64,000 nucleotides of DNA from Mizuhopecten yessoensis (GCF_002113885.1 NW_018408382.1:127693-191692), one strand, 5' to 3'; shown: positions 14,356 to 37,821, counted from the first letter of the stretch. A program made the numbers and translations. Notes: a model not told the origin generated them from the letters alone.

Positions 14356-15479
14356 CTATAATTTAGACAGCTCTTGTGAAAATTACTGAGAATTCTTACT
14401 GTCTCCGTGGAAAAATTGTCCAACATGAGTATTGGCTGTGAGACCTACAGAATTATGCTGTACGTGAGGTCCACTCTCACTAGAAACAACTAGGTTACCT
14501 GAAAAATGTGTTCAAGATTCTGCCTGAACAGATCTCTGTATTAATGGATTTGGTACAAAAAAAATGTTTTGTTTTACAATTATGTGTTATTGAGACAATG
14601 GGTGATGGATATCGATGGGAGTGTAATAACAGATAGCTAAATGTCTATTATCTACCACATCCTTATCTGAGGTGAAGTGATCAAGAAAATTGGCATCTAT
14701 GTTGAAGGAATTTAAAGGGATTACATTGCCAGAAGACAAAACAGTATATCTTCCTCACATGAAATTCTTTCCTGTCAGGTGTCCGTCTTGGTATCCCTCT
14801 TTAGATCTTTATTACCTTATGTGTTCTGATCACAACAAACATTGCTAGGAGTAGTCCTAATTATCTGTATGGTTGTATTATTGTTCTATATTTGTATAAT
14901 GTAATATGTCTTGCTCTGGTAGTAGGGGAACAGGAGGGCAATAAGTGTAGTACAGTGTGATCAGCCAAATGATGAAATCACAATTAAGTTCAAGATACAC
15001 ATCAATCATTTTTAATATGATTGAAAATTAGCAAAAAAAATTCTTACTTTTCGAGTAAATTTTATTTGCTTACGGTGTATAAAGGCAATTTGTACATGAA
15101 GATGTATTTGTTTTCTTCCCTTGGTGGGATTTTTAGACAGATAGGCTGGACAATGACTATGTTGTTATTGAGAAAATATTTTTAGAAAATTTGACTTGAA
15201 GCAGCAGATTCTGGTAAATTTTACTGGTGTACAATGTATAGAGAGAACTTGTTAATTGAGATCATGTTTGTTTTCTTCATTTGATAATCTTTATCGACAG
15301 CTACGTCTGATAGTGATATTGTTATTGAGAACACGTGTTAAGAAAATAAACTTGAATAATTGGATTACGGAATATGAACGTGATTGATCAATTCCGTGAT
15401 TTCCAGCCTTACTTCTTGTCAATATAGTTTTATCACATAATGTACTGTGTTATACAGTGAATATACCCATATCATATTT

Positions 15480-16776: not shown

Positions 16777-18340
16777 TTATAATATGACTAACTCCCTATC
16801 AATGAGGATCGTATTATGGCTTACCAACTCCCTATCTATGAGGATTATATTATGACTTACTAACCCTTTTGGGATCATAGTATGACTTGCTGTATCCCTA
16901 TCTATGAGGATCATAGTATGACTTGCTGTTTCCCTATCTATGAGGATCATAGTATGACTTGCTGTTTCCCTATCTATGAGGATTATATTACGACTTACTA
17001 ACACCCTATCTATGAGGATTATACTACGACTTACTAACTCCCTATCTATGAGGATTATATTACGACTTACTAACACCCTATCTATGAGGATTATATTACG
17101 ACTTACTAACTCCCTATCTATGAGGATCATATTATGACTGACTAACTCCCTATCAATGAGGATCGTATTATGGCTTACCAACTCCCTATCTATGAGGATT
17201 ATATTACGACTTACTAACATCCTATCTGTGAGGATTATATTATGACTTACCAACTCCCTATCTATGAGGATCATATTATGACTTACTAATCCTTTTGGGA
17301 TCATAGTATGACTTGCTGTATCCCTATCTGTGAGGATCATTGTATGACTTGCTGTTTCCCTATCTGTGAGGATAATAGTATGACTTGCTGTTTCCCTTTC
17401 TGAGCTGATTGTAGTATGACTTGCTGTTTCCCTTTCTGTGCTGATTGTAGTATGACTTGCTGTTTCCCTTTCCGAGCTGATCGTTGTATGACTTGCTGTT
17501 TCCCTTTCCGAGCTGATCGTTGTATGACTTGCTGTTTCCCTTTCCGAGCTGATCGTTGTATGACTTGCTGTTTCCCTTTCCGAGCTGATCGTTGTATGAC
17601 TTGCTGTCTCCCTTTCTTAGCTGATCGTTGTATGACTTGCTGTTTCCCCTTCTGAGCTGATCGTTGTAGACTTGCTGTTTCCCTTTCTGAGCTGATCGTG
17701 GTAGACTTGCTGTTTCCCTTTCTGAGCTGATCGTGGTAGACTTGCTGTTTCCCTTTCTGAGCTGATCGTTGAATGACTTGCTGTTTCCCTTTCTGAGCTG
17801 ATCGTTTTAGACTTGCTGTTTCCCTTTCTGAGCTGATCGTGGTAGACTTGCTGTTTCCCTTTCTGAGCTGATCGTTGAATGACTTGCTGTTTCCCTTTCT
17901 GAGCTGATCGTTTTAGACTTGCTGTTTCCCTTTCTGAGCTGATCGTTGAATGACTTGCTGTTTCCCTTTCTGAGCTGATCGTAGTATGACTTGCTGTTTC
18001 CCTTTCTGAGCTGACTGTAGTAGGACTTGCTGTTCCCTTTCTGAGCTGACTGTAGTAGGACTTGCCGTTTCCCTTTCTGAGCTGACTGTAGTAGGACTTG
18101 CTGTTCCCTTTCTGTGCTGACTGTAGTAGGACTTGCTGTTCCCTTTCTGTGCTGATTGTAGTAGGACTTGCCGTTTCCCTTTCTGAGCTGACTAGTAGGA
18201 CTTGCTGTTTCCCTTTCTGAGCTGATTGTAGTAGGACTTGCTGTTTCCCTTTCTGAGCTGATTGTAGTAGGACTTGCTGTTTCCCTTTCTATGAGGATCA
18301 TGGTATGTCCTGCTGTTTCTATGATGATCGTAGTATGATT
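16777..18340. repeat. ~36-bp minisatellite (~43 copies) with a sequence gradient along the array
   Basis: Left units are TTACTAACTCCCTATCTATGAGGATTATATTACGAC and right units are TTGCTGTTTCCCTTTCTGAGCTGATCGTTGTATGAC. Confidence 0.95.
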
Positions 18341-19417
18341 TACAAACTCTTTATCTTTGAGTATATGTATTTACTTATAATTACAAGGCCACAGGGTCAT
18401 ATATAATCGTTGGCTCTAATTTTATTTATCGTCTGATCGCATTCTTCAACGAATTTAAAAAAAATGAGAAATACCCGTTAGTTTCTTACAATGAATAAAG
18501 CGCTTATAGTAGTAACCGTACCGTATTCAAAAGATAAAACCAGATCAAGATTATTGAAAACCTTCCTACAGATAAAGGAACTAACCCTACTAGGGGCTGA
18601 GGGCGTTTTAAAAGGTCAACATTTGCTAATTTGCTTTAAATGACAACCTATCTGAAACTAATGGGCAGGTTTTTACCAAATTTTGTTGGATACATCCTTT
18701 GTGAATGTGTGAATATAAGCGAAGTGGCTTACATTCCAGCGAACTCGGTCAAACTACAGAGTCAATTTAAACCTAGTAGTTCAGCAGTCGAAGGCGACTG
18801 GGATATTTATATACTTACCTGAGCAGGTTTTGGACTTTTCTTTTCGTCATCTGAGAACACCAATCCGTTCTGTTCTCTGTACCTTACTCTGTCGGTTATG
18901 TCGACCTATGTACCAGTCTTCATTGGATTTTGGCTGTTTCGAGAACATTTAACCCCGAACAGAGATTTCTAGACTACCGGATATCTAACACTGGTTTGTG
19001 ACCAACATTCCACAATTTGACAGGACGCTGCTCATTTCGAATAATCCAACAACACCAAATATCATTAATGCGTTTTATATGTAAAAAGTATTTTATTTTG
19101 AAAGCGGACAATTCAATTCGTTTCGATCGTCTGCACATTTTCGTCGAAAGTACAGTACACAAAAAACGACATTTTCTTCGGGTTGGTAAAGAATGATTGT
19201 ATGTGGGCTCATATAGTACAATCAGTGAAATGCTTGTGTTACGTGTCGATTAAGCTGAACTTTCATGTGCAGCATGACAAATAACTCACCAAATTGGTTC
19301 TGCTATGCTTTGTTTTAAACACAGACAATGCTAATCAGTAAAGGATGCAACCGAAAGAACATAAAATTCTATTAATCACACCTTATCAAATAAATGTAAT
19401 ACGTTATTATTTCGTAT

Positions 19418-20558
19418 TTACTTACAGTTCTTATCTACACAGCAGGTGTACCCAGAATTACACGTCAGGTCAGTGGTCACTTCCTCGTCATCATGACACA
19501 CGTGGACGGTACCAGAAAGGCGACACTCCCCGGGACCTTTAACTTCGAGTTGTCCAACTTTTGCCTTAACACCACAAGTACCAGATGGAATGCAGCATTT
19601 TCGGTTCCCGGTGCACAACACGTTTCCAACAAATAGGTGATTTCCAAGGTCGCAATTATCAGAAGTGCAGAACCCTGTACTTTCACACAGGGTTGAATTT
19701 GCTGGTGGAGCCGCTACAGCTACCGTCTGAGTCTGGACGACTATAAACATGTTTAATAGTATCGGTATTCCAATGCTTTGGAGTGATTATTTGCTCAACA
19801 TTACTGCCGAAAATAGGTTGTTTTCCGCAGCTAAAAAGTACCTTATTTTCCCAAAATGACCAAAACCCTGAGGAATATATTTCCAATTTCAATACAAATC
19901 ATTTTATATTTTCCAAATTCATCAAGGAACAGGCTGTTGTAACCAAAATTTTGGTAACAAAAACACAATACTATACTATTGTGTTCAAAACAACGAACGT
20001 TAGATGAATAAAAGATTTCATCAGAGTATTTTTTCAAAACTGATTTGAAATACCATTGATCAACTGTTGGAGAAAGTTTTAAAATGTAAGCTTTAAACCA
20101 GACAGAACCTGCTGCAGTCGTAATTAATTATTTATGTATATCCTCTCTTGAAATGTCAATGAATTCAAATGAACAGTCGCAACACTCTACGGTTAAACAA
20201 AAACAATTATCGATCTTGATATCTTACCTGAAGGTGACAGCGCTACTACTGGCGGCATGTACGGGTCGCGTATGACGCCTGTAGCAACCTCAATACCAGG
20301 TGCTGAATCTACTACCGTGTGGTGGTGGTTGTGTATTGCACTAGCACCTGCTGCAATAACAGTCCCAGCTGCTAAGCCCAAACCGGCCCCTATTGCAGTT
20401 TCAGCTGCAGCTTCTGCAAACAGCTCCCCAAACAAAGATCCAAGCCCAAGTAGAGCTGCCGCGAACTGTCTCTTCTGCTTCTGTTCCGTTTCGTCTTTAG
20501 CCAGGGTTATACTAAGTGTGGCTACCACCAAGCAAAAAACAAGGGTCTGTTTCTTCAT
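19418..20558 (-). CDS. Secreted big-defensin-like precursor with two tandem beta-defensin-like modules, copy A (intact, 217 aa)
   Basis: Coding exons 20228-20558 and 19418-19740, phase-1 intron (TCAG|GTAAGA...TTTATAG|). Signal peptide MKKQTLVFCLVVATLSITLA, pro-segment KDETEQKQKR, Q-initiated Ala/Gly hydrophobic region, HNHHH, P/V/T linker, then C-X5-C-X4-C-X12-C-X5-CC and C-X16-C-X8-C-X11-C-X5-CC-X4-C. Gene structure is high confidence; the family call is inferred. Confidence 0.85.
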
Positions 20559-20870
20559 CTTTAACTGTAATAAGTAAATATTTGGCTGTTTAGAAATTCA
20601 TTGAGAAAATCTACAGCACGGCCGCCGTTTTCGATAAGTGATAAGTTCAGTTATAAGTTATTTTTGTTAGATGATCGTTATACTAGTATACCAATTTAAA
20701 CGATTGTAAAATTGCCTTTCTTGTCTACATGAAACACTAAATCGAGTTCGATTTCCTTATCACCCTTGATCTCTTGTTCCTACTTATGATACTTATGTCT
20801 GCAACTGGAAAGTACAATATTCATATTAATGTATAACAAACCTTTCGTGTGAAATATTCAAATTACAATC

Positions 20871-20874
<4 letters not shown>

Positions 20875-20922
<48 letters not shown>
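20875..20922. repeat. (GA)n microsatellite in intron 1 of copy A
   Basis: About 24 consecutive GA units. Confidence 0.98.
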
Positions 20923-20927
<5 letters not shown>

Positions 20928-21713
20928 CATCCAAAATTAAACTTAAAGCAATTAAAATACAATTTCTAAATCGTTTCAAGTTTGGAAGGTGGAGGGAACA
21001 GGCAATGATGATTTTATCATGTTGACTTTTTTCTGCAATAGGAATTGTTCAATATTCCAAGGGTGGTTATATTGCAGAAAGTTATATAGCAAATCAGGCG
21101 CTTGTTCAATAAAATTAGGCTCTCGAGCATACTTCATTTCAAAATTCACGAGAACGAAGTGTACGGTAAAAAGGCGAGATGGTAAAGTGGTGATGGTTAC
21201 ATCATAAAATAACAAGAAACTAGAATATCGGTAAATAGTATTTCAAATTTATGGATATTGCTGTTCCAGACTATAGCTATCTGCTTGGTGTAATCGTGAA
21301 AATGTTCCCTGCTTTCTTAACAAACTGTAATAATAATTATTCTTTGGACTGCATACCGGCGAGTCGTACCCCTTCACGTTTGTTGACTGATTTCATACCA
21401 AAAGAGACAGAAGTACCTGTACTGAAAGGAGATAACAATGAGTGTTATACAATACGGAAACACATGTAATCTAGTGATGCTACTTGTTCCTAACTGATGC
21501 TTATAACTGTGCATTCTCACCTAAACAGCATTCTGCAGAGAACTTGTGAAGGTACCGGTTCTGAATGTATTTTACACTGCCTTATATAAAAATCATAACA
21601 CATCTTTCATTAATAAACTTTTAGTGCTGCATTTTTTCCCAGAAAAATAACCAGTCAAATTAAATTTCCTCTTATCATTACTTCTTAAACCATCCCGAAA
21701 TATGAATACTTAC

Positions 21714-21960
21714 TGTGTACACGTGTTCCTCCTATTTAATATTCCTCGTATCAGTTTGAGGTTCCCTCTCTTTCCCTCGCTTTATATAGTGTTAAAGAGG
21801 AAGAGAATTTTGAAATCTGTAACACAACGTGCTAAAAGTACGTGTGAACTAAAACTATCTGTGAATGTGTTAGTATATCTCGAAGTGGCATTCTGTGATA
21901 TATCCATTTGTGGGTGATAACGATGGGAATCAACCATATGTAAGTGTTTCTACTACCTTG
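21714..21960 (-). promoter_or_regulatory. TATA promoter and non-coding exon 1 of copy A
   Basis: Minus-strand TATATAAA at 21781-21788 and donor ACA|GTAAGT at 21712-21713. The block is homologous to 32089-32420 and to the reverse complement of 35095-35353. Confidence 0.7.
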
Positions 21961-22662
21961 ACAAGTTTCGATCGGAATATGACTTTGCCGTTCATTTTAC
22001 TAGATTTTATAGCGGTAGGTTAACTGTTGATAATAAGCAATCTGATCAAAATCATCTGTTACAGATGTTCAGGCGTAGTACGAAGTTAACGGAGCCATTT
22101 AACAGATGATTTTAATCAGATTGGATAAGAAGGACTTTTGAATGAAAAACAAGACTGTCTTCATTATTTTTTCATCTTTAGATATGTTCGAATAGTTTAT
22201 GAGAGTATCCACGCTGGCTTATATCTAAAGATGATTTTCCCGTTACGTTCAAATAAAGACATTATTTGACAATTTAAGTAACAAAGTCAAGAATGTCAAT
22301 TTAAGACTAAAATGTAAGTTGTTGGTTTATTTGAAAATCATACGGGATGTATGAATGCGTGAAAGAGTGAGAATCTTTTCTTTGATAATGTTGTGTTTAG
22401 AATTGATTGGACGTTTAATATACTACAACCTAGGTATTGATCAACAACCAGGAATTCAAGAAGGATAACAGCTGCCTTAAAAAATAACACGACATTTGCA
22501 ATGTCCATATTGTATACACCCATATGTACAATAAATATATGTGTATGACTTTTCATATAATAGCAATTAAGTGCAAGATATAAGATGCAGGGTTCGATTT
22601 ACAGAAGAGCGGATCGATTTCAAAATCCTAAATATTTGCGTAATGTTGTTAATGTGTGAGCT

Positions 22663-22740
22663 ATTTTTATACGCCCGTCGTCCAACTGGTCGTATATTGG
22701 TGTGGGCTGCTCCGTCCGTCCGTCCGTCCGTCCATTGGTT
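22663..22740 (+). mobile_element. 5' end of a Helentron-derived (HINE/DINE-1-like) element
   Basis: TTTTTATACGCCCGTC...GGTCGTATA inverted pair followed by a (GTCC)n microsatellite. Confidence 0.55.
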
Positions 22741-23552
22741 CTCCAATTTTATTAAGCTACTTGGTTGCCTCATATCCTGAATGCTTTGAACAAGTTCTTA
22801 AATCATTTAAACGCTTTTTGGCAGAATGATACCTTAAATTTGTTCATTGCCAAATAAGGGCATTTCGTCCATTTTTTTTTTTTAATTATTTGTTTAATTC
22901 CTTTCAAATGCAGTATGGTAATACAAAACCGAAAACATGTTTAACATATATAACAGGTTTTGTTGTCACGTTCAACTTCTCATACCAACACTCCTACCTC
23001 AAAGCCAAGGTTTTAGTTTTAGTAATAACAACATTGACCACGACAGTGTAATTCTGAGTCACAAAATAGCTTGCACCATAAACACAGTAAATGAATGGCA
23101 AGGGCACAGTCACCAACAAAACGGTGACAGTAAACATATTTATATCATATGTCACTACCTGCTTCCAATATATCAATACCCTCCGAGGGTCTGACGGGCG
23201 TATCATGCTTCCGATCGCGGTGCTCTTGTTAATGTTTTATTCGTCAATGACATCGGTTACTCACAACGTTTACAAGAAACTAGAATAAATCCGAAATCTA
23301 GTTTGTATTCTTAACTAATGAAGTACAAATGTAACTAGAAAGTCTAGGTTTGTTTTGATCACAAATAGGAATTGAAAACGTATTTTGCGAGCTTTCGAAA
23401 ACGTCTGTTTCCTTTGTCAAGCAAAGAATGTAAATGACCGATGTCTCGACTCTAAACTGCTGACAACAACTCACTAAGGCACATTGGGCCGAATCAGTAA
23501 AATCAGCTGTCAAAAATTATAGAGACATCTCGCCCAATTGCACGCTAATACT

Positions 23553-23870
23553 TCAGGCAGTTCGTGGGGGTGAGGGTAACATGTTAACCCATTCCGCCCC
23601 CTTAGTGGAGTTTAAACTGGGGTCAACAAGATGGCTTGGCTGGTGGCCCCCTTTGTCTCTGTTCATTGAATCCTCTTCCCTCCTAACCAAGATGAATTCT
23701 TTGATTTTCCTGACTTTCCAGTTGTCCTCCCTTTCAAGCACTTTCGAGTTGTCCCAGTCCATGATGTGGTTGTGTGTGTTAGCATGGTCTATAATGGTTG
23801 ATTTATTGTATTGTTTCTCCGATGATTTCCTTAATTTCTAGTGTAGATTTGCTGTTTTTTGGCATTCCTC
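23553..23870 (-). mobile_element. Penelope-like element, GIY-YIG/C-terminal fragment
   Basis: HIMDWDNSKVLEREDNWKVRKIKE...MNRDKGGHQ matches the typical PLE C-terminal motif. Confidence 0.75.
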
Positions 23871-25592
23871 TTTGTATTCAAAATAAATCTGGCCTTTATT
23901 ATTGATACCAGACTGATGAATCTTATTCCAAATATAAGAAAGTAGCTGTTTTCCGTCTGAAAAATCCTGATTTTACCCAACTTTACGTTATTATTGTCAA
24001 ATTCGCAAAAGAAGGCACAAATCCATTTTCAAGTTCAAGTGCCTCGCAAGAAGCGAAAAAAGCTTCTTATTGAATGATTGTAGTAGTATATAATGTTCCA
24101 ATGTAGCATGTTCAGATTTATTACAACAGTCAATTGATTTTTCCGGAATAAAGGGCTATGAACTGTGTTTTGTTTATCCATTTTCTAGGTCACAAAGGTC
24201 AAAATTGTTACAGTCTTTTAACAATTTCTTTAGATTCTTGAGATTAAGTCTTCACATGAAATCAGCATTTGATTTACAAAAACTGTTTCAAGTCATCTTC
24301 GCAGTAGGATTAGCGGAACATTCTGACGGGTTTTAAGTAGATTTAGAGGTTAACTGGAGGTTTTTGTTTGTCCGCTAGCAAATCTTCAAATACATACAAA
24401 AGTAAATACGGCTACCCTCATTCGACAAATGAAACCAATCCTTCGAATCGCTTGTTTACTGAATTAGTTGCGGGGAGGTTTTTGGAAGAGCGTTGTTCTG
24501 TTAGAATAGTATGACACGCACGCGCATGACCTATCGTCCAATTTCCCATGGTTATTAACCAGCAAAAAGTGTCGTTAAATTGCAAACGTGGTAGAATTGT
24601 CCTTAAACTTGCTTATATGAAAGGCTGTCCAGTTTTCACAAATACACGTGCTAAACCCACTCCTGTACAGGAGTCAAATGTGTTAAAAAGTCCCAAACGA
24701 CTTATTCTGAAAGACTTTAAGGTCTAGATAATTAAAGGAACAGGTGAGAACGGGTTTGTCCAGCTGTGTTTGTATCTTGACGTGGATGGTTCTATGCTTT
24801 GTCTTTCAAACACGTCCTCTAACCATTCAGTTATATACTGTTTTGATCCGCCTTTTTTGGGAGCCGAAGTGGGGTTTAGCTTCATTTATACCAAGTATGA
24901 TTTTTTTCTCTCACGTTAATAGAACATTATTCCATTGATAACGTAACCGGGTTACCGCTTTTTAATATCGGTCTCAAACCCCTTTTAATTATCAACTTTT
25001 CTTTAAGTAAATGATAGTTTTGAGAGATCTAACGATGTTTTTGATCACCATTCCTCAATTTATAGGGATCAACGAATATTGCAGCTCGGGTGATTGTTGC
25101 CCTTAACACTTTTTGTTGCATAACTAACAACAACAATCAACAAGTATAAATCAAAGCGTTTATATATGCCACTTTATTTCTTTAACATTTCAAATATTTC
25201 TGTCTGCAATTTCGTCGAAATTTCTAAAAATAAAAAGGTATGATTATTGTACACAAACTTCAAAACATTTTCTTCAAGTAGGTAGATAAGTGTTATATAC
25301 AGGTTCATATAACTCAACCAGTTATAAATAATTATGTGCGATGTTTTGATGACTAGTACGATTTGTACTGTCACCTTCATCAGATAAATGACAAGTATAG
25401 CATATTTACACTTGTCAAATGTGTATGAGGCAATCGCCTAGACAAGTCGATTCACTTTAGTGTGCCACATGACGATCAAATCAACGTAGACAATATAATA
25501 AGTACATGATACAATGGAAAGGAAAACGAAAGAAACATTCTATTATGAACACCTAATTAAATGGATGGAATATATCACAACTATGTGAATTT

Positions 25593-26345
25593 CTAGTAAA
25601 TTTGGTAATCATTTTTGACCCGGACACTCTCATCAATAAAGACTAAAAAGTTCATTAAGCCATTACACTTACAGTTTTTATCTACACAGCAGGTGTATCC
25701 AGAATTACAGGTCAGGTCAGTGGTCACTTTCTCGTCATCATGACACACGTGGTCGGTAACAGGAAGTCGACACTTCCCGGGACCTGTAACTTCGAGTTGT
25801 CCAATCCTTGCCTCAACACCACAAGTACCATTTGGTATGCAGCATTTTCGGCTCCCGACGCATAACACGTTCCCAAGAAATAGGTGATTTCCTAGGTCGC
25901 ATTTACCGGAAGTGCAGTAGCCTGTACTTTCACACAGAGTTAAATTCAGCGGTGGAGCCGCTACAACTACCGTCTGGACACCAGTCAGAGTACCAGTATG
26001 GTCAATAGGCTTGACCACTGTAACGTGATATTTAATAATACTGATATTTTATTGAATTGTGATTATTTGCTATGGTTTATACATTATACAGGTATAATTG
26101 GTTACTTGTGAATATGTTTTTCTTGAATATCTAAGGATTCAATGAGCAGTCGTAACTTTTTACTCTAAAACGACGCAAATAATTTTCTATCGCTATGAAT
26201 GGCATCCTACCTGCAAGTGTTGGTTTTACTGCCGTGTGAGGGTGATGGTGTATGGCTGACTCGATACCTGCTGCTGCAAGACCAGTCCCAGCGGCTACGC
26301 CCAGACCAGCTCCTATTGTTTCAGCTGCAGTTCCTGCAAATAACC
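25593..26345 (-). pseudogene. Big-defensin-like copy B: intact exon 3 plus 5'-truncated exon 2
   Basis: Exon 3 (25593-26017) keeps all 13 Cys of copy A and reads on into a C-terminal extension. 26211-26345 encodes FAGTAAETIGAGLGVAAGTGLAAAGIESAIHHHPHTAVKPTLA with donor G|GTAGGA. The signal peptide part is absent. Confidence 0.8.
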
Positions 26346-26559
26346 GAACAATGATCTTTTCCTGAGCAAATCAGCCAGGAGTCTCTTTTATGTTTATTTC
26401 ATTATAACGGTATTTGAACATGACAGATATACGTGCATTTACAATTTCATTTCGCAAAATAATAGATAATTATGCATGTTAAAGTAAAAGCCACAATGTA
26501 AATAGGTATGACTCATCTGCATGTTTATTCAAATTATTTACACGCTGGCTTTGTTTGAC

Positions 26560-28480
26560 AAAACCGCTTTCTTAAACTTACTCTTACTGATTTTAGGTCT
26601 GACAACATATCTCGGACACATTGCAGTGCCCTTTGAAAGTGATCGCTTTTGTCAACCTGGCAATCTCCACTATTTCTGTACAGGAAAGACCCATTACTTG
26701 TGCCTCTGAGGTCGAAGCTGCCCTTGTAACATGATCACTGAACTCATGTGCATCAGGTCTAGCTAGGCCCAAGAGTCTTACCAACCAACCTGCAACAGCC
26801 TAGCTACCAATGGTTTGTGTGGATCAACGTAGCGCAACAGGCGCTGGTGCCAAACAGTAATCAAACATTTCCTCCGTTGTTAGAATTCTCTAAGTAGCAT
26901 TTGAGGACTTTGACTACACAGATCTCAGGTCCCGCCTTCAACGTCTGGAATAACCCCTGCAAAGGGGGCTGGCCCTTTTTAGCGATTTTAAAATCGAAAT
27001 ATTCATCAGCTTCTGACAAGTAACGTTTGTCCATCGCACACAGTTCGAAGGATCTGCTGGCTGAATCGAAGACCAAAAGAATATTATTTTCAGTGTCAAC
27101 ATTTCATCAGTCAACGATTGATTAGAACCGATATCTTTCGTATAATCCAACATCATATTCTCATCCCAGGTGGCCACATCACAGAGAAGTAGGGTCTTGT
27201 ACATATCATCAAAAAAGGAATTGCGGATCAACGACAGTTCAATGTCCTATAACTATAACTATCCCGTTTCTAAAAGCATTCTGACAAATAATTTACAATC
27301 TCTATCGTTCTAAAACTTCGTCTGACAAATCCATCCATCAACTCCTCCAGAGATACTATGGCCTGGTATGATTTGTGGACTAAAAGTAACTGTATCTGTG
27401 ACAATTTTTTAATATCGATAATGGAGGGATGCTGGAGTGATGATGTCAAATGATCCAATATTTTTTCCAACTGTCTGGCAGGTGTTTCTCTCAGGACTAC
27501 TGTTGTCTGACATTTCTTTCTGTGTGGCAGCGACAGACATCTCTACCGAGGTGACAAGGTACCCTAAAACTCTATTATGTGAGGGCACATACAAACTTCG
27601 CCCAGTTTACGAAGAAGCCAAGACGGTCTAATTACAATGCAAACCAATTGAGATTCCTCAACAACCCTTGCTGACACTGATTGAGGACTATCATACCCTC
27701 CAGGTTAGTTACCGGTGTTATTCCAAGACGTCTTTGAAAGGGGTTTACGAGTTGGATGAAGAGTCGAGGAGCAGGGAGGCACTGCTTGGAACTCGCACCA
27801 TGTGTTCCCCCAAACAAACTTTAGAAATTCCCTGTGACTGAGGAAAACAGACATTGTAAAGTAGATATCTTTCAAATCCAATTTTATCGTAGGTCCCCTT
27901 TCTCATCGGAGAATTGTGAGATTTGTTATGCCTCCATCGTGTAATGTTAACATACCACTGGGCTGAAAAACTACTGGCCACAATCAGCTACTAGTTTGAT
28001 TACTTGTTTCTCTTACATACCCACTATCTCCAAGGAGTTTGCATCCATGTTTGTTGTAGGAAATGACCTCTGCACTGGAGGTTGTAAAAGAGGTATCTTA
28101 ATGACAATGTATATATCAAACAGGTTTTGTGTAAGCAATTATCAGTTACTTTAACCGTCATCCTAATTGAAAGTTGACTTACAGCCCAGCATTGTCACCG
28201 CCTAGTAAACCAGATTTTGATCGATCGATTTTTTTGATGGCTCTGGCAAGAGGTTTTGTACGCCGCTTGTTGCACTATACCTTCCTTACCATTGTTGACT
28301 TTGAAGGTGACCGACTTACCTTTTTTCTTTTCCAGTTGGCCAATGTCTTTTCAATGAGAGCATTATCAGGGATGAACTCTGAGAGCTTTTCCCTACACAG
28401 GTGATCTCGTCTAAATCTTATGTATTTGCAAATTTGTTTCGAATTGCCTATTCTAGCACGGAAATCGTGAATATGCATAA
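26560..28480 (-). mobile_element. Degenerate DIRS-type (tyrosine recombinase) retroelement remnant
   Basis: Frameshifted fragments WDENMMLDY..NQSLTDEMLTLK, ASRSFELCAMD and FSDHVTRAASTSEA resemble DIRS YR motifs. Boundaries are approximate. Confidence 0.7.
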
Positions 28481-28929
28481 CGATATCTTAATGAGGTTTG
28501 CGAAATGAAATCGGATTAATTAAGCATTTTGGATCAACATTTTATGGGGAAATATTGCTTTGGGTTTATATAGTGCTTTACAGTTAATAAAATATCGTTG
28601 TCAGTTTAGATGTATGGCGTGATTAGAGGGTATACTTATATTCCAAAAAGGACACATGAATATTGGAGGAAAAGGACATCTTTCAATATTTCAATGCTGT
28701 ACAATTTCCAATAAAATTAATGTAACATAATTTTGTTTGTTACTATAATACTATTGTTTCTTGTTCGGAATTACAATGTGTACCGAAAGTGGTATTTTTG
28801 ACAATAAGATTACACAATCCTTTGTCCATTTTACTCTTAGTATGAATATTTCAATGTCAGTTGGTATGATATTATACATTATTAAACTTTATCGAATAAA
28901 GCTTGTATCATCAACTTGATGCAATTGAA

Positions 28930-29214
28930 TAAACTATTTCAACGTATAAAATGTGCAAGTGTTTGTTGCAATGTTTTTACTGTCATCACCCCCTCTGGAG
29001 GTGCTACTTGCATCGATACCTGCAGCAAGACCAGCGCCCAAACTTGCTCCTATTGCAGTTTCAGCTGCAGTTCCTGCAAAAGCCCTCCGAGCAAGGATTC
29101 AAGCAAAAAAGCAAACTGTCTCCTTTGCTTCTGCTCCGTTTCGTCTTTTGCCAGGGTTACACTAAGTATGGCTGCCACTAAGCACAGAGTAATGGTCTGT
29201 TTCCTCATCGTTTT
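28930..29214 (-). pseudogene. Big-defensin-like copy C: exon 2 with a frameshift and lost donor
   Basis: ATG at 29208 gives MRKQTITLCLVAAILSVTLAKDETEQKQRRQFAFLLESLLGGL. A 1-nt deletion in a T run follows; the restored frame reads FAGTAAETAIGASLGAGLAAG. The paralogous CTTGCA|GGTAGG donor region reads CTTGCACATTT. Confidence 0.75.
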
Positions 29215-32088
29215 CTGAAAAAACAGAACAGCGAAAATCAAAGGTGAGGTCAACATTTGGCCCCCACTTTGATTTCTTTTATTCTTTTGCCATATGTAGA
29301 TACAAAAAATTTATCAATAATTGCATAAATAATTATTCATAATTACTACTGATAGCCGTAGTGAACCTCCTTGTATAACAGCAGGTTGAGTATTGGTATA
29401 CATGGAGTAAGCGTAGCGAAACTTATAATTAGAAAAACATACAAATTTTCACCACATTTAAATTATAACCAATATTGTAAACTTGCCTATATATAGTTAT
29501 AATGGTAGTCTATATTTCAAACTTTCCATACATATATTATCTCTACAGAATCATTTTTATGTAATATAAAAACCGGTAAAGTACTTTGTGAGCATGCCAA
29601 ACAAGATCAATGCCCAGTTTAACATAATCATGGAGATTTGAGTATCAATGTTAATTATGGTAAATAACGTCACATGTTCTGTTCTTGTATCATACCAAAT
29701 CACTTTATTATATTACGCATGTTTTAAAGTTATGTGCAGCAGTAAGAACTCATAAATATGTATCCTGCCAAAGTAATCTTTCCTCCGGAGAGTTACTTAA
29801 GGTTGACATTGACATATAGACAAAGATATGCAATTATAAAAAAAAAAACAATAAAATAATCTTAATAGTAAAACTATTTTACACTTTATTATACCCCCCG
29901 CAACGAATCAGCTTGTCTGTCCGTCTTTCTGTCCGTAGAAAAAAATGTCCGGACAACTTCTTCTAAAGAAATGGACCAATTTCCACGTAATTTCTTTTTC
30001 AGTCTGACCCTTTTTTTCCGGAGAAATGGCCCTTTGTTGAAAATACTTGTCCTCCACAACTCCTCCAAAACTATGGGGCCAATTTCAACGGAAGTTTACA
30101 GATATGGTAACTGCCCCCTGACATTGTGCATCCAAGTAGTATGTTTTCATTCCGACCCTTTAAAAATGAGTTGTGGCCCTTTGTTGAAAAATTCTTTGTC
30201 CGCCTCATGAACTACTGAGCCGATTTCAATGAAAGTTTACAGATAGGGTAATAACAGGAAGTATGCCAGTGACATATATACTTAAATAATTGCTGGTGGG
30301 AGAATATGGATTGATTTGAAATGCTTTGCTTTCGTTAGCCTTTAGCTTACAGATCTGGTTAATATAGGAACGGGGATATTGCTCATTCATTATATGACAA
30401 AATATGAAAGAATATTATTTTACATCGTTAACTCTAAACAAATAAAGCAAGGAAAGATATACTTGTCTTAGTCCCCATACAAAAACAATATTTTAGCACA
30501 TATGATTTTTGTGACCTTGAACGAAGATCAAGGTCATCAACGTTTACAAAACTTCAATCCATTCACATGAACAACCTACTTGCCAAATATCAAGCCTCAA
30601 GGACCTTTGGTCATGAAGAAACACAAGTTAAAGAAAAAGTGGAAAGAAAACTTATTTTGAATCAAAAGTGTTATATGACAAATTTACCGGTTGTCAATAT
30701 TTTTGAAATTCCTGATGTTGAAAGATATAACAAGTATGAAAAATAGACTCGGTTTAGAACTATGTATGTTAACGTGTCAAAAATGGAAATTCTCTCACAT
30801 ATTTTTCTGCTTTAATCTTCAATAAAAAGAACACTTCTTTCTTGACACACGATGATTATATAATTTTATAGTAATTGTGTTATTTAAATGCTCTTGGAGG
30901 AATTATATTACCGCACTTTTAACACCCACACAGGTGTAAGTCAATGAGGTCCCATTTATCATAAAATGAATTCTGGAACTAACTGTTCTTGATTTAAGCT
31001 TCCTAAACCCATACCTTTTTGGATTTATCTTGTTTTGAAATTCCAAGCGGGGCCGACGATAATGTTAAATCTCCATAGGCGTTGACTGTACCTTTCGCTA
31101 GAACATGTGGTTGGTGCGTCATTGTTAGCACTTCTTAGTTTTCCTTTTTCTTCCTTTTCAAAACCCCGTCCACACTTAATGACCATCTGAATTGTTAAAT
31201 ACTACTCAAATGTGACCACTCCTACCACATTGCTGTACACATAGCGAAAAAAGTGTGCATTGAAAGGAGGTGTTATCGTGTGCTTTAAAACTTTTAATAA
31301 ATAAGATTTTCGACCAATTACGAGATGTTTGTGTAACTGTCATTTGAAGTCGAGTTTACTGCCACCGGCGATCTCTTGTTGACAAAAATGATCTGATTAC
31401 CTATGCTTACGTCGGCAGCTGGAAAGTAAGAGGCATTGGGTGACAATACTCTAAACCATTAATGCGAAATTACCGAAAAACAAATAAAAGCAAAACTAAA
31501 CACCAATATGATCCAAAGCTACGGAAATTTATAAGAAAAAAATGTTTTCACAATTATGTCAACTTTTGTATCTGAATAATATAACTTTTACATGACAACA
31601 AAATGTTTTGCATATGATACACTTAAACTTATCAAGAATAAAGATGGATTTTCACTGAAATAATATAAGACATTATTCCTTTTACTGGATGAACCAGTCT
31701 AGGGCAGCGTATTCTGGCCACTACATAGATACGTTTATCTTGTACGTAAAACATACTATCTTGTACGTACAACTTATGATACGGGGATCCTAAAGCTGCA
31801 AAAAAATATGTGCTGAATGGAGATAACATGAGAGTAATGTTAGATAGAAATATACATACACTTGTATGTTATTTAGTTTGCAGTGTCAACTAAACAACAT
31901 TTTGAAAAGCATCAGAGGGTAATATTTTTCACCACACCCTATATTATTTCCATTGCATACCTTATACTGATAAATCTTTTGTGTTGCAGTTATTGTTTTC
32001 CGCAAAATAATACAAGATATACCACTGAGGTTACTTCTATGCATTACCTGCTTAAACGAATCTAAAATTGTGACAGAACAATACTCAC

Positions 32089-32420
32089 TGTATACACGTA
32101 ATCCTTCTACTAAATCGTCGTTCTGTCGTCTAAATTTGAGGTTTTTGCCCTTCGCCTCGCTTTATATAATACTAAAAAGGAAGAGAAAATTGACATCTGC
32201 GAGATAATTTAAAACGTTCGAAACATAACCATCTGTGAATGTGTTTGTACTTCCATGGCCATTACATATTAAAAAACTAAAGTATTGTTCTGTGTACGAT
32301 AATGTTGGGAATACAACCATATGCAAAAGGGCTCATACTTCCTTGACAACTTGTTGTTTTTGATTTTGTTTTCGACGCGAATAAGACTATGAAAGGGTTC
32401 TTAACTATTTCATAGCGGTA
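32089..32420 (-). promoter_or_regulatory. TATA promoter and non-coding exon 1 of copy C
   Basis: Minus-strand TATATAAA at 32161-32168 and donor ACA|GTGAGT at 32087-32088; aligns with the copy A promoter. Confidence 0.65.
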
Positions 32421-32799
32421 AGGGTCACAATGAAAAAAAAAAGAAATTAAATGAAAATCAGGAATTAAATTAGAAATATGTCTGATTGCATTATTTGCAT
32501 CATTATTTATCTGGACCTATTCACTATACGTTTGTATTCGGAGATAAAAAAAAAATCACAAAGACAGTTGTACGTTTGAATAGTTCCATAATATTGACAA
32601 ATTATGAAGTAAATCAGTAATTTTAGTGCAAAAATGCAAAGGCGGCGCTTCTTTTGAGAGTTCGTTAATTAAATTACATTGGTAGGTTTAAAACCACTGC
32701 CAGATCACTTTCGTTTCCAATTACAATTTTAATAATCATTCCATTATTTTTTCATGCTGAAAGAAAGCACACGTGTTGCTTTTATTAAAGAAAGATAGA

Positions 32800-34030
32800 C
32801 TTTTCCTTTAAAACGCTACTTGTCCTTAACGGCAAAAAAGATTTTAACTAAATTTGGTCTGGAGCATTCTCCTACCGTAGGGATTAAGGGATTTTATGCT
32901 TATTTAGTCTGGAGCATTCTTGAGCCAAGGGGACTTAATTTTGAATAAACGGTGGGTGTGGCCCTCCTCGGGGCAGAGCGGCTGGCCCAATAGGGGAAAT
33001 AGAGGTAAAACCTTAAAAATCCTTCTTCTACCATAGGGATTAAGGGATTTCGTCGCAATTTAGTCTGGAGCATCCTTGGGCCCAGGGGACTCAATTTGTA
33101 TAAACAGTGGGTGTGGCCCCCCTGGGGGCAGAGGGGCGGGGCCCAATAGAGGAAATAGCGGTAAAACCCTTTAAAGTCCTTCTTCTACCGTAGGGATTTA
33201 AACATTTTATTCTTATTTAGTCTGGAGCTTCATTGGGCCACTGGGACTCAATTTTGTATTAACGGTGTGTGTGCCCCTCCTTAGAGTAGAGGGGCGGGAC
33301 CCCATAGGGGAAATAGAGTTAAAACCTTTAAAATCCTTCTTCTACGGTAGGGATTAAGGGATTGTATCCCTATTTAGTCTGGAGCATCCTTGGGCCAAGG
33401 GGACTCAATTTTTTTATAAATGGTGAATGTGGCCCCCATTGGGGCTCAGGAGCTGGGCCCAAAAGGGGAATCATAGCAAATTCTTCAAAATTCTTCTTCT
33501 TCTGTAGGAATGACAGGATTTTGTCCATATTTAGTACGCAGAATCCTTAGGTAAAGGGGAACCAATTTTGTATAAACGATGGGTCTGACCCCCCTGGGGG
33601 CAGAGAGGCGCGGCCAAATAAGGGATATAGAGGAATAACTTTAATTTCCTTTTTCTTCCGTTGGGATGAGGGTATTTTGACCAAATTTGAACAGTAGCAT
33701 CATATTTGGAAGGGAAATCAATTTGTATAAATGGTGGGTTTGGACTCCCTGGGGCCAGAAGGGCGGGCCCCTATAGGGGAAACATAACAAATTCTCCAAA
33801 ATCCTTCTTCTACTATAGGATTGTCAGGATTTTGATTAAATTTGGGATGAAGCACCCTTGGGTGAAGGGGAACCAATTTTGTATAAACGGTGGGTCTGAC
33901 CCCCCTTTTGGCAGAGAGGCAGGACCATAGAGGAAAAATAGCTTTTAAATCCTTCTTCTTCTGTAGGAATGACATGATTATGTCCATATTTGGTCTAAAT
34001 CATCCTTGGGTGAGCGATACAGGCCCTCAA
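32800..34030 (+). mobile_element. Helentron-derived (HINE) element with an internal ~160-bp satellite-like array
   Basis: About 7-8 diverged units containing TTTAGTCTGGAGCATC and AAATCCTTCTTCT; ends in GGTGAGCGATACAGGCCCTC, typical of the 3' end of these elements. Confidence 0.75.
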
Positions 34031-35094
34031 TATTTCTTTACTAATGTATTTTTGATTTGATTTCATATCTTGTTAACCATATTTTCTGATAGTTCATTCG
34101 GTTAAATAACCTGCATTGTGCACCTTCTTGTATAGTCTTTCTCAACTTTGACATTACTCACGTTAATATGAGTAACACTACGGATTGTCAAACATGATTA
34201 TGGTTGCCTTGGACATAGGAATACCTACAGTAAATGGAACATTTCTAGATTTTTTCATTTTGAGTCTAACCAGTTTTTGTTAGATAAATAGCAACATCAT
34301 AGATGAAACATATACCAACTATTTCTAGAAATTTTGCTGTAAAGCTGATAGTTGAGATTATAACTCGCCAATTGACATCATATTGCAAATAAGTGCGACT
34401 TTTTAGATATTCTTTTCGGTTATTCGAAACTAGACTTTTATAACTTACACAATTGTACGAAAAAGTTATACACATATAGGTATAAATAGTGTAGGCACCA
34501 TTATTATTCAATGTCCTCAATATGTTTACACCAAAGTCGTTCTATTTTTGACATATCACAGTTTACTAACTTGAACTCCTGTCTTTGATAATTACAGAGA
34601 TTGCAATTTATTTTACTCCTACCCATGCTAGATATAACACCAAGGCTGTAATTTGTGTTCGAAAAGAAAGCGTTTCTTACCCTCTAAAGTATCTATTTAA
34701 TCTAAATGAAACATCAAAGAAGCATATTTCACTAATTGACATATTCATTAATCCCGTGTATTTTTTAACGAACCCCAATCCGTACTTTTTAACGATTAAT
34801 TTTCTGACATGTGTGACTTGCCGAATTATATGTATTTATTTACAAGCACCCAAATTTGTGGAACAGGACTAAAAAATAATTGGAACATACAGAAGTTATC
34901 AGTTAATATCAAACGGTATCCAAACATAATTATTGTAATTTTTGTTTTTCATTAATATAATCGTTATTGTCAATACTGATCTCATCGCCATAAAACCTAG
35001 TAAAATAATCGCAAGTGTCCAAACTCCAATGTATATATATGCGGTTCGAAAATTTTCTGATACCATTTAAAATTATCAAGGAAGTAGAAACACT

Positions 35095-35353
35095 CTACAT
35101 ATGGTTGTATTCCAAACGTTACCGCCCACAAATGGATATAGAACAGAAGGATACTGTTTCTGTAGTGCACGGGATTGGTAATGGTCAAGGTAGTACAAAC
35201 ACATAAACAGATGGTTTTATTTCGAACGTGTTTACGAGCACTTTATCTCGAGGATGTCAACTTTCTCTTCCTTTTAAATACTATATAAAGCGAAAATAAG
35301 AGAATTGACGTCAGACTGAGACGACGCTTTTAGTGAGAGAAATACGTTATACA
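35095..35353 (+). promoter_or_regulatory. TATA promoter and non-coding exon 1 of copy D
   Basis: TATATAAA at 35282-35289, TCAG initiator-like site at ~35311 and donor ACA|GTAAGT at 35354. CATATGGTTGTATTCC at 35098-35113 is shared with the other two promoters. Confidence 0.7.
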
Positions 35354-36318
35354 GTAAGTTTTGTACTACCATGCTCTATTGTACGTTTAAGGGGGTAATG
35401 AATAGAGAGACTTTAATGATGCATCTTGCGCTATTTTAATGAGAGAGAAAACAAGACTATATTTACTGCAACACAAGACTTTAACAATGAAAGGAATATA
35501 ATGAGAAGTCTATATATAATTATGTGAAAAATAACACATACAAAAACTGTTTTTACTTACACAATTTCCCAGCAGAATGCAGAATACATGTACTTAAAGA
35601 TTACACATAATTTTCATTGTATAACTATCATTGTTATCCCTTTACGAGACTTGTACTTTATGTTTTGTTTCGTGACATTGTTGGCAAAAAGTAGTGTTTT
35701 TGTGTGTTAGATTAGATATTAGATATTATATATGTGTATTAGATATGAAATCAGAAACATCAAATGTGCTATGTGATAACTCATTCATATGTTAATTGAT
35801 TTCTGTTATTTTTAATTCAAAGCAGATTATAATTTTATGATAAACAAGCATATATACATTGTCTGAAACGGAAAAAATATTCAATGTCTTTTAAACACTT
35901 TTAACAACATTCTAGTTATTTTGTAACTGTAACCATCTTCCTTTTTACTCTCCAGCCTTTTTGCATCCAGTCGGTACTCTTCGTTTTCGTGAATTGTATA
36001 TATTAAAGAAGTATTTGATTTTTACCTTAATTTCTTCATTATAAGTACACAAATGTAGCTAGGAATAAGGAACAATAATTATTTACTACTGGTGTATTGA
36101 GAAAGGAAGTATAATGGCTAAATGCTCTTATCGTCATTTTTTTTAAAACGGTGTCTGGTTGGGAAACGAATACAAGATACAGTCAATAGAAATTGCGACA
36201 ATATAATTACAAAAGATACCCATCTCTTTGATTAGGTAACATAATGTTACTATACTTCCTTATATTTTCGTCAATTGCATTATGTAAGTATTTATATTGT
36301 CAATATTTTAAAACAAAG

Positions 36319-36495
36319 CGTAGCCGAACCGACTTGATAGTTATTCTGCACATTAAAGTGTAGCCGAACCGGCTTGATAGTAATTCTGCATATTAAAATG
36401 TAGCCGAACCGACTTGATTATAGTTTTTCACATTAAAGTGAAGCCTAACCGACTTGATTGTAATTTTGCACATTAAAGTGTAGCTGTACCGACTT
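36319..36495. repeat. ~39-40-bp tandem repeat (4-5 copies) in intron 1 of copy D
   Basis: Unit GTAGCCGAACCGACTTGATAGTTATTCTGCACATTAAAGT. Confidence 0.85.
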
Positions 36496-36917
36496 GTTAA
36501 TTTCATGGTCATCTCATATGCTTTACTGGTCATTTTTTCTAATTAGTCATCGAAACGTCACACAAACTTTTAGCAATCTACTAGTGTATTATCCCTACCA
36601 CAGCATAATGACAAATTATCAAGGGTAATTCCGCGTAAATTAATTGACATATTGCTTTTCGACAATTAGAGGTGTAAGTTTTCAAAGCTGGCAATGAAAA
36701 TGTTTAAGAACTTTCCCTAATACATGTTTTTTCGCTATGTACATACAGCAGTGTGATAAGAGTAGTCACGTATGGCTAGTAATTCAGGTGGAATTGTAGA
36801 GGGAGAGTGTTTTTAAAAAATCTGACAAGGTCAAAGGTTACTAAAATATGATAACAAAGGGATTAAAATATTCAAGCAAAAAAAGTTTAATCCCATTGAT
36901 TTTATTACAGAAAAAAG

Positions 36918-37659
36918 ATGAAGAAACAGACCCTTGTTATTTGCTTGGTGGTAGCCACACTTAGTACAACCCTGGCTAAAGACGAAACGGAGCAGAAACA
37001 GAAGAAGAGACAGTTCGCGGTAGCTCTGCTTGGGCTTGGATCCTTGTTCGGAGAGCTATTTGCAGGGGCTGCAGCTGAAACTGCAATAGGGGCCGGTTTG
37101 GGCTTAGCAGCTGGGACTGGTATTGTAGCAGGTGCTAGTGCAATACACAACCACCACCACACGGTAGTAGATTCAGCACCTTCAGGTAGGATTCAATTCA
37201 TCACGATAGAAAGTTAGTTGTATTTTTTAAGAATACAGAGTAGAGATGTTTGTTTTAATTTATAGACGTAAAGATCAGGTATATATTACGCTCATAAATA
37301 ATGATGTTTGTTGCATGTAGCAAGATAAACTCGTTCAAAATGAATTTTGTTTTTTCAAGTTTAAAAAAAGAGCTTACCAGCGATATTTCGAATGATGTTT
37401 GAAATAGTAGAATACAAAAAATAACAATTGAGTTTTTTCTATAAATAGGATTAGATTTATTGCGCTCGCGTGTGAGTTTGTAAATATATTAATGAAACAT
37501 TTTACCGACCACACATTTGTTACTGCATAACTACAGTATATCACATTTACAGTCGTTCAAACCCAGACACCAGCTCCGCCACCAACCCTGTGTGAAAGTA
37601 CAGGCTTCTGCACTTCCGGTAAATGCGACCTAGGTAATCATTATTATGTTGGAAACGTG
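36918..37659 (+). CDS. Big-defensin-like copy D (open frame, truncated by an assembly gap)
   Basis: Exon 2 (36918-37185, phase 1) is nearly identical to copy A. Exon 3 starts at 37553 with VVQTQTPAPPPTLCESTGFCTSGKCDLGNHYYVGNV and then enters Ns. Confidence 0.8.
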
Positions 37660-37821
37660 NNNNNNNNNNNNNNNNNNNNNNNNNNNNNNNNNNNNNNNNN
37701 NNNNNNNNNNNNNNNNNNNNNNNNNNNNNNNNNNNNNNNNNNNNNNNNNNNNNNNNNNNNNNNNNNNNNNNNNNNNNNNNNNNNNNNNNNNNNNNNNNNN
37801 NNNNNNNNNNNNNNNNNNNNN
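37660..37821. other. Assembly gap (162 N)
   Basis: Run of n characters. Confidence 1.

Follow-up and report, generated by a model that had tools for sequence, protein, structure and literature searches.

What kind of protein is encoded by a small cluster of related scallop genes whose products recall the big defensins in precursor layout but carry two cysteine-rich arrays instead of one? The question is raised by a 64,000-nucleotide (nt) stretch of DNA from the Yesso scallop Mizuhopecten yessoensis (contig C5055:127693-191692), referred to below as the window. Four copies of one gene family, named A, B, C, and D, were recovered in the window between positions 19,418 and 37,659 by tblastn with the two coding exons of copy A. 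Their placements match those given in an initial annotation made from the sequence alone, which described four paralogs, with A intact, B and C broken, and D truncated by a gap. Copy A encodes a 217-residue product identical to the RefSeq protein XP_021367521.1, titled "uncharacterized protein LOC110459533". The reading favored here, with a probability of roughly 0.4, is that the family is an offshoot of the big defensins with a double Cys array, and that its members may serve as host-defense effectors.

The family is restricted to scallops (Pectinidae) and is arranged in tandem in M. yessoensis. An exhaustive HMMER search of 1.84 billion representative sequences retrieved only two M. yessoensis records and one protein from Argopecten irradians (XP_069134806; 191 residues, 61% identical over the Cys part), which bears out the earlier claim of a lineage-specific family, and the same three proteins were returned by word-indexed searches (5.8 billion clusters) with exon 2, with XP_021367521.1, and with the family profile. 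The other rows of the HMMER search (Tudor, He_PIG, LRR, and bacterial Ig repeats) are long repetitive proteins and were set aside as artefacts of composition or repeats. The initial annotation had also depended on there being no full-length match to a characterised family, and none is found among the 1.84 billion representatives, in Pfam, or in the PDB. Likewise, no publication on the family was found in searches by locus and protein identifiers and in searches on scallop byssal and Cys-rich proteins.

As read from its exons, the gene probably encodes a secreted and processed protein made of two parts. In copy A, which lies on the minus strand, exon 2 (20228-20564) has its ATG at 20558, contributes 110 codons, and ends in phase 1 before GTAAG. 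It encodes the signal peptide (residues 1-20), the prodomain KDETEQKQKR, a Gly/Ala-rich hydrophobic region starting with Gln, the His cluster HNHHH, and a linker. After an intron of 487 nt, exon 3 (19418-19740, minus strand) resumes in phase 1 and encodes a Pro/Thr/Val linker, Cys module 1, Cys module 2, and the ending ..NCK, followed by the stop codon at 19420-19418. The phase-1 junction between exons 2 and 3 is common to copies A, B, and D and to the Argopecten gene, in which the acceptor lies 7 nt before the ATG, exon 2 ends in phase 1, and exon 3 carries 12 Cys. The contents assigned earlier to exon 2 (signal peptide, pro-segment ending in KR or RR, and Q-initiated hydrophobic region), as well as the phase-1 link to exon 3, are thus read in the sequence itself, but the accompanying description of the layout as one domain per exon has to be dropped, since both Cys modules sit in a single exon.

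Within the family, the prodomain is about 10 residues long, charged, and ended by KR or RR. The boundary with the mature protein reads ..QKQKR/Q in copy A, ..KQRR/Q in copy C, and ..KQKKR/Q in copy D, while the Argopecten protein has KKKK-Q without Arg. The hydrophobic region that follows spans about 50 residues (45 to 50), begins with Gln, is rich in Gly and Ala, and holds two to three conserved Glu. It is accompanied by a conserved His cluster, in the form HNHHH, HHHPH, or HHH, and by the Pro/Thr/Val linker, the length of which varies from 16 residues in Argopecten to about 22 in copy D and 48 in copy A. Regarding the Cys part, module 1 has the pattern C-x5-C-x4-C-x12-C-x5-CC and module 2 the pattern C-x16-C-x8-C-x11-C-x5-CC. 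Both display G-x-C at their second Cys, and the two six-Cys modules of exon 3, each with its GxC and terminal CC, can be seen directly, as initially described. The order of the Cys, the G-x-C, and the x11/12-C-x5-CC are all that the two modules share.

The canonical big defensin of the same species offers the closest point of comparison. The My-BigDef gene was located with short degenerate patterns derived from the published peptide (PMC7203481 supplement) on contig C3747, at about 224302-236564, where three coding exons extend over about 12 kb; a whole-genome scan with PF14862 yielded two false places and missed this true gene. The definition and layout of big defensins, and the variation of linker length and charge among them, have been described, together with a scallop big defensin gene having phase-2 and phase-1 introns (PMC7203481). 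In My-BigDef, the first coding exon, with its acceptor 6 nt before the ATG, ends in phase 2 and covers the signal peptide, an EKR-ended prodomain, and the beginning of the hydrophobic domain; the middle exon completes this domain, its end being in phase 1; the last exon begins 8 residues before Cys1 and encodes a Cys domain with loops of 6/3/14/4. Several of these features recur in the new family, namely an ATG 6-7 nt into exon 2, a non-coding exon 1, a dibasic-ended prodomain, and a phase-1 intron at the 5' edge of the Cys exon. The fraction of G, A, and V in the hydrophobic domain is also comparable, 0.56-0.58 in My-BigDef vs. 0.49-0.60 in the new family. As here, big defensins (Tt-BigDef, Cg-BigDef1, and Ai-/My-BigDef; PF14862) combine a flexible linker of variable length with the order C..C..C..C..CC and a G-x-C at Cys2. 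In big defensins, the N-terminal domain adopts a beta1-alpha1-alpha2-beta2 fold, and the disulfides link Cys1-5, Cys2-4, and Cys3-6.

At the level of the residues, the resemblance is concentrated in module 1. The Cys spacing of big defensins is about C-x6-C-x3-C-x13/14-C-x4-CC, and module 1 has nearly the same size and the same order, with loops of 5/4/12/5 vs. 6/3/14/4, a G-aromatic-C at Cys2, and a common GN(V/L)..C..G..KCC.P, although module 1 resembles the BigDef Cys domain only weakly. When module 1 was compared with the BigDef Cys exon, BLASTP gave an E-value of 0.013 (for a single comparison) and hhalign an E-value of 5e-4 with a probability of 32% over 17 columns. In 3,000 shuffles with the Cys held fixed, the similarity of module 1 to BigDef reached z 2.5-3.2 (p 0.013-0.026) in all four family members. 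With several independent features of layout and the weak similarity of module 1 in hand, descent from big defensins may be proposed tentatively, at somewhat less than even odds. The fusion of a big-defensin N-terminus to a double beta-defensin, as first proposed, is consequently retained in part: precursor and gene layout do match My-BigDef, while homology and a defensin fold are putative.

The differences from big defensins are nevertheless considerable. The new family adds a second, larger six-Cys array, the loops of which (16/8/11/5) are outside the spacing range of big defensins, so that 12-13 Cys in two arrays are opposed to a single Cys-rich domain. The mature protein has about 187 residues instead of about 85 (about 80-90), a pI (isoelectric point) of 5.2 instead of the 9.8 of scallop big defensins, and, unlike big defensins, a His cluster. 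Moreover, the family is multi-copy, whereas the scallop big defensin is described as single-copy and little varied (PMC7203481).

A number of observations weigh against an origin from big defensins or against a role in host defense. First, the charge is unfavorable: the mature protein released at the KR site (187 residues) has a net charge of -7.7 and the stated pI of 5.2, and the Cys part, with a pI of 5.4, is also anionic. Second, the gene layout is not identical, the phase-2 intron within the hydrophobic domain, an extra intron specific to scallop big defensins, being found in My-BigDef and in no member of the new family. Third, outside module 1 the similarity is for the most part not significant. 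Module 2 compared with BigDef gives p 0.11-0.64 in three members and p 0.024 in copy B only; it shows no significant similarity to module 1 either, the alignment scores between the two modules being at the level of shuffles (z -0.06 and 1.8). A first hhalign run of module 1 against module 2 was discarded, as it matched only residues common to both alignments. For the hydrophobic domain, similarity to BigDef beyond composition is not significant or borderline in the shuffle test (p 0.04-0.4). Fourth, the pieces of copies A, B, and D and the full proteins match neither Defensin_big (PF14862) nor Defensin_beta in Pfam up to an E-value of 10, although this negative carries little weight because the true My-BigDef Cys exon itself scores 16.8 bits on PF14862, below the cut-off of 25 bits. 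Searches of PDB sequences, with a single sequence as well as with a profile, returned rows at chance level only, such as RhTx and BoR11, and a feature search of the ESM Atlas gave no usable match for either half of the protein. Fifth, the substitution rates described below give no sign of diversifying selection. Finally, the raw RNA run X20 has zero reads on the gene, which means only that this X20 sample does not express it.

The AlphaFold2 model of the 98-residue Cys part with both modules has a predicted local distance difference test score (pLDDT) of 42 and is unreliable, a further point on the negative side. Module 1 alone is modelled with a pLDDT of 78.6. This all-beta mini-domain, the short strands of which fall at Cys2, Cys3, the middle of the loop, Cys4, and Cys5-6, is compatible with a small beta-sheet domain of defensin type. 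Small as it is (38 residues), the same model has no meaningful match by Foldseek against the PDB, by VIA-align, or in the Atlas, these searches yielding either nothing or generic beta fragments, and this too is entered on the negative side. The structural check suggested in the initial annotation thus gives an all-beta model of module 1 without a fold match for it.

The hydrophobic region has been considered above as the counterpart of the N-terminal domain of big defensins, but it could conceivably be read as a membrane anchor, the stretch of about 45 Gly/Ala-rich residues forming a glycine-zipper hairpin that displays the Cys part at the cell surface. The small-xxx-small spacing, a Kyte-Doolittle maximum of 1.7-1.8 over 15 residues, and a match to an FtsX-like permease, weak and not significant (E 0.18), go in this direction. 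However, the N-terminal domain of My-BigDef is at least as hydrophobic (15-residue maximum of 2.19), and yet big defensins are soluble (PMC7203481). In addition, the stretch is broken by the two or three conserved Glu, and a single span would leave the disulfide-rich domain in the cytosol, so that such an anchored protein appears very improbable.

The selection acting on the family has been estimated from the ratio of nonsynonymous to synonymous substitution rates (dN/dS), which is 0.13-0.17 between genera, where dS is saturated, and 0.28-0.45 between paralogs. These values point to a constrained coding family in which purifying selection acts across genera. The strength of this selection on the Cys part, with the same dN/dS of 0.13-0.17, would also fit binding to a fixed target by a disulfide-rich protein directed at something other than microbes, whether a protease or carboxypeptidase inhibitor, a toxin-like protein, or a signalling ligand, the hydrophobic part then being an anchor or a pro-region. 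The carboxypeptidase inhibitor of ticks offers a C-terminal tail to the enzyme from a pair of beta-defensin-like domains; here too, a single chain holds two six-Cys arrays and a short conserved tail past the last CC, and its acidic charge is unusual for membrane-attacking peptides. Against this stand the lack of any match to an inhibitor or toxin family in Pfam or the PDB, the variation of the C-terminal tail between genera (..VDKN(CK) vs. ..IPKQ), and the conservation of the hydrophobic region and His cluster, which equals that of the Cys part and makes a disposable pro-region unlikely. Taken as a whole, a binding protein of this sort is judged quite unlikely.

That the genes are transcribed and spliced is well documented. 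RNA contigs from two different studies (runs X1 and X5) carry the 20228/19740 junction predicted in the initial annotation; in both runs, exactly the positions 19741-20227 are omitted, and the omitted stretch is bounded by GT..AG on the minus strand. The possibility, entertained at the outset, that no copy yields a spliced transcript is thereby removed. One contig of X1 also omits 20565-21713, joining 21714 to 20564 across a GT..AG intron, and this joint, along with a conserved alignment, substantiates the non-coding exon 1 that had been proposed. In X1, the word depth is about 4,000-14,400 over the exons vs. 25-45 over the intron and flanks. Loose contig ends match the exon 2/3 junction and the exon 3 sequence of the D type, and RNA contigs cover the end of copy B exon 3 together with its 3' flank, from which it follows that several family members are transcribed. 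The segment 25194-25299 is joined to an A-like exon end in contigs of X1, X2, and X5. A few sites separate the contigs of highest abundance from copy A, some of these sites being common to copy B and to a further exon 3 on contig C73508 (see below) and one to neither; these contigs thus stem from alleles or from additional copies with a likeness to A of at least 95%. Elsewhere in the window, RNA reads and contigs pile on 22060-22130 and 23390-23730 and continue into unrelated sequence on both sides, so that these two segments are likely to be dispersed repeats transcribed from elsewhere.

The 3' end of exon 3 bears on the number of Cys. The last Cys codon of this exon overlaps a conserved T/GTAAGT donor (19426/19425 in copy A), and TGTAAGT ends exon 3 alike in A, B, and C73508. 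The Argopecten RefSeq model splices at ..CAA T/GTAAG, and a fourth exon finishes the stop codon as T/AA (Argopecten locus L011, 11490-11500 and 12310-12318); the spliced product ends in ..CCIPKQ and has 12 Cys. The unspliced reading of copy A ends in ..NCK with a 13th Cys (6+7 after the signal peptide). The initial count of 12 Cys, six per module, is therefore correct for the Argopecten product but not for unspliced copy A. The high depth of X1 stops short of 19300-19417, a drop which fits either splicing there or a diverged allele. A 397-residue GenBank model (OWF43568.1), which uses the donor and extends copy A into a minisatellite, was taken as an annotation artefact. This minisatellite, at about 16780-18352, is made of units of about 33-45 nt that are open in frame on the minus strand, and it is responsible for the dip of the AT skew at 16-18 kb.

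Both the abundance of the transcripts and the Cys count could be accommodated by a structural protein, i.e., a matrix component of byssus, shell, periostracum, or mucus, in which silk-like Gly/Ala stretches, metal-binding His, and disulfide cross-links would do the work and the likeness to big defensins would be convergent. The His-rich ends of mussel byssal collagens cross-link via metal ions. An extreme, sample-specific abundance (depth of up to about 14,400 in X1, none in X20), an anionic and Gly/Ala-rich composition with a conserved His cluster, and the one free thiol left by the 13 Cys of unspliced copy A would all be in keeping with this, as would the fact that most of the protein shows no significant sequence similarity to defensins. 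On the other hand, the protein is small and non-repetitive, its dibasic-ended prodomain is typical of processed peptides, the even 12 Cys of the Argopecten product leave no such thiol, and the loci are unnamed in the searched literature on scallop shell and byssal proteins. Exon layout and intron phase also match those of My-BigDef, and a matrix protein is accordingly regarded as unlikely.

Returning to the big defensin offshoot, the following mode of action can be envisaged. The family would have diverged from big defensins and gained a second Cys array. Cleavage by a convertase after KR would free the Q-started mature protein, the hydrophobic domain of which might be involved in membrane contact or self-assembly, as in the N-terminal domain of big defensins, while the C-terminal part, locked by disulfides, could confer stability and bind the target. 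The product would then act as an extracellular host-defense effector, with the His cluster possibly serving as a pH or metal switch. As the protein is anionic, its action would not be a simple cationic attack; the role in host defense is inferred by analogy with big defensins and is weakened by the negative charge. That the family represents a third architecture among big defensins and beta-defensins, with a hydrophobic domain and two six-Cys domains in one exon, anionic, equipped with a His cluster, expanded in tandem in Mizuhopecten, and acting as a very abundant host-defense effector independently of positive charge, is more doubtful and should be considered as a suggestion only.

Considering the promoters, the TATA box of copy A (21781-21788, minus strand; TATATAAA) can be aligned with those of copies C and D and of the Argopecten gene. 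Non-coding exon 1 of copy A (21714-21757, minus strand) has its 3' end at 21714 from reads, followed by the donor GTAAGT, and its 5' end, which is inferred, was placed about 30 nt past the TATA box. In copy C, the TATA box (32161-32168) and the non-coding exon 1 occupy 32089-32168 on the minus strand, with the donor after 32089, and in copy D they occupy 35282-35353 on the plus strand, with the TATA box at 35282-35289 and the donor after 35353. The non-coding exon 1, the TATA box, and a GTAAGT or GTGAGT donor align across A, C, D, and Argopecten. A TTCTCTTCCT block situated about 15 nt upstream of the TATA box is kept in the paralogs and in the Argopecten gene (21795-21822 in A, 32163-32199 in C, 35253-35287 in D, and 9679-9718 in the Argopecten locus L011). 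In Argopecten, the promoter elements lie about 300 nt upstream and consist of TTCTCTTCCT, the TATA box, an exon 1 of about 45 nt, and the donor. On the opposite strand, the TTCTCTTCCT block displays a GGAA core, which is ETS-like. Two repeats are found in the first introns: in copy A, a (CT)n microsatellite some 70 nt long at 20865-20933, where reads break off, and in copy D, at about 36310-36500, a unit of about 50-60 nt (gtagccgaaccgacttgat...) that is repeated four to five times in tandem.

The other copies are decayed or interrupted to different extents. Copy B, on the minus strand, is left with a degraded 3' half of exon 2 (about 26211-26346), with the donor after 26211 in phase 1, and its 5' end is missing, so that it has neither start codon nor signal peptide. 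Its exon 3 (25668-26017, minus strand) retains every Cys and is 81% identical to that of A; where A has its TAA stop, B reads TGT, and the frame stays open to 25593. In copy C, exon 2 (29018-29214, minus strand; ATG at 29208) has a frameshift after ..RRQFA and a stop after 52 codons, and no exon 3 was found by tblastn of the copy A exon products against the window. The open reading frame of copy C (29052-29208, minus strand) still codes for a signal peptide, an RR-ended prodomain, and a Leu-rich peptide of 22 residues before the stop. From its sequence, copy C is probably dead, though the product of this reading frame would resemble a secreted peptide that is short and linear. Copy D, which corresponds to XP_021367566.1, lies on the plus strand; its exon 2 (36911-37185; ATG at 36918) is 22 codons shorter than that of A at the 3' end and ends in phase 1, and the first 35 codons of its exon 3 (37553-37659) are followed by a run of N (37660-37821). 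A weak exon-3-like match at 34803 was dismissed as noise.

Elsewhere in the genome, the search found a single extra piece, an exon 3 on the unplaced 1.2-kb contig C73508 (L003). On the minus strand of this contig are a complete exon 3 (524-823), with 88% protein identity to A, and an exon 2 tail (1188-1244). It was taken as one more family member only, and the gap of copy D was left as N. The state of the copies supports an evolution of the family by tandem duplication and decay, in keeping with the birth-and-death process initially put forward. Comparison of the Argopecten locus with the window detected no common flank within reach.

What is new here is a separate, multi-copy, and very highly expressed scallop family in which the precursor and intron layout of big defensins is found in an anionic protein with twice the number of Cys arrays. 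Vertebrate beta-defensins are considered to descend from big defensins (PMC7203481). If homology with the latter is true, the family would illustrate a diversification of defensins by the gain of a domain, as opposed to the loss of domains in non-canonical big defensins, and would provide a natural test of the role of the hydrophobic domain beside a non-cationic partner. If homology fails, it would still be an abundant orphan family of secreted proteins. It is also a candidate immune or secretory marker in aquaculture species (Yesso and bay scallops).

Among other known systems, three invite comparison. Type II crustins of crustaceans have a Gly-rich region and 12 Cys, including those of a WAP domain. 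The new family shares with crustins the signal peptide, the Gly-rich region, 12 Cys, and two CC, but it has no PF00095 (WAP) match in Pfam, and its spacing is a misfit as well, the crustin WAP core being x5-C-x5-CC-x3-5-C-x3-4-C vs. x11-C-x5-CC here around the second CC. The tick carboxypeptidase inhibitor consists of two domains of beta-defensin fold and has no hydrophobic N-terminal domain; the new family also presents two small tandem domains with six Cys each and, like the inhibitor, would not be a cationic peptide that attacks membranes, and no sequence match to the inhibitor was found in the PDB. The avian double-beta-defensin AvBD11 is cationic. Similar to the new family, it combines in one chain 12 Cys in two divergent six-Cys arrays of defensin type (PMC9138766). 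Compared with AvBD11, the scallop family has both arrays in one exon, is anionic, and displays much longer first loops in its second array. The likeness between the two, if any, would be convergent.

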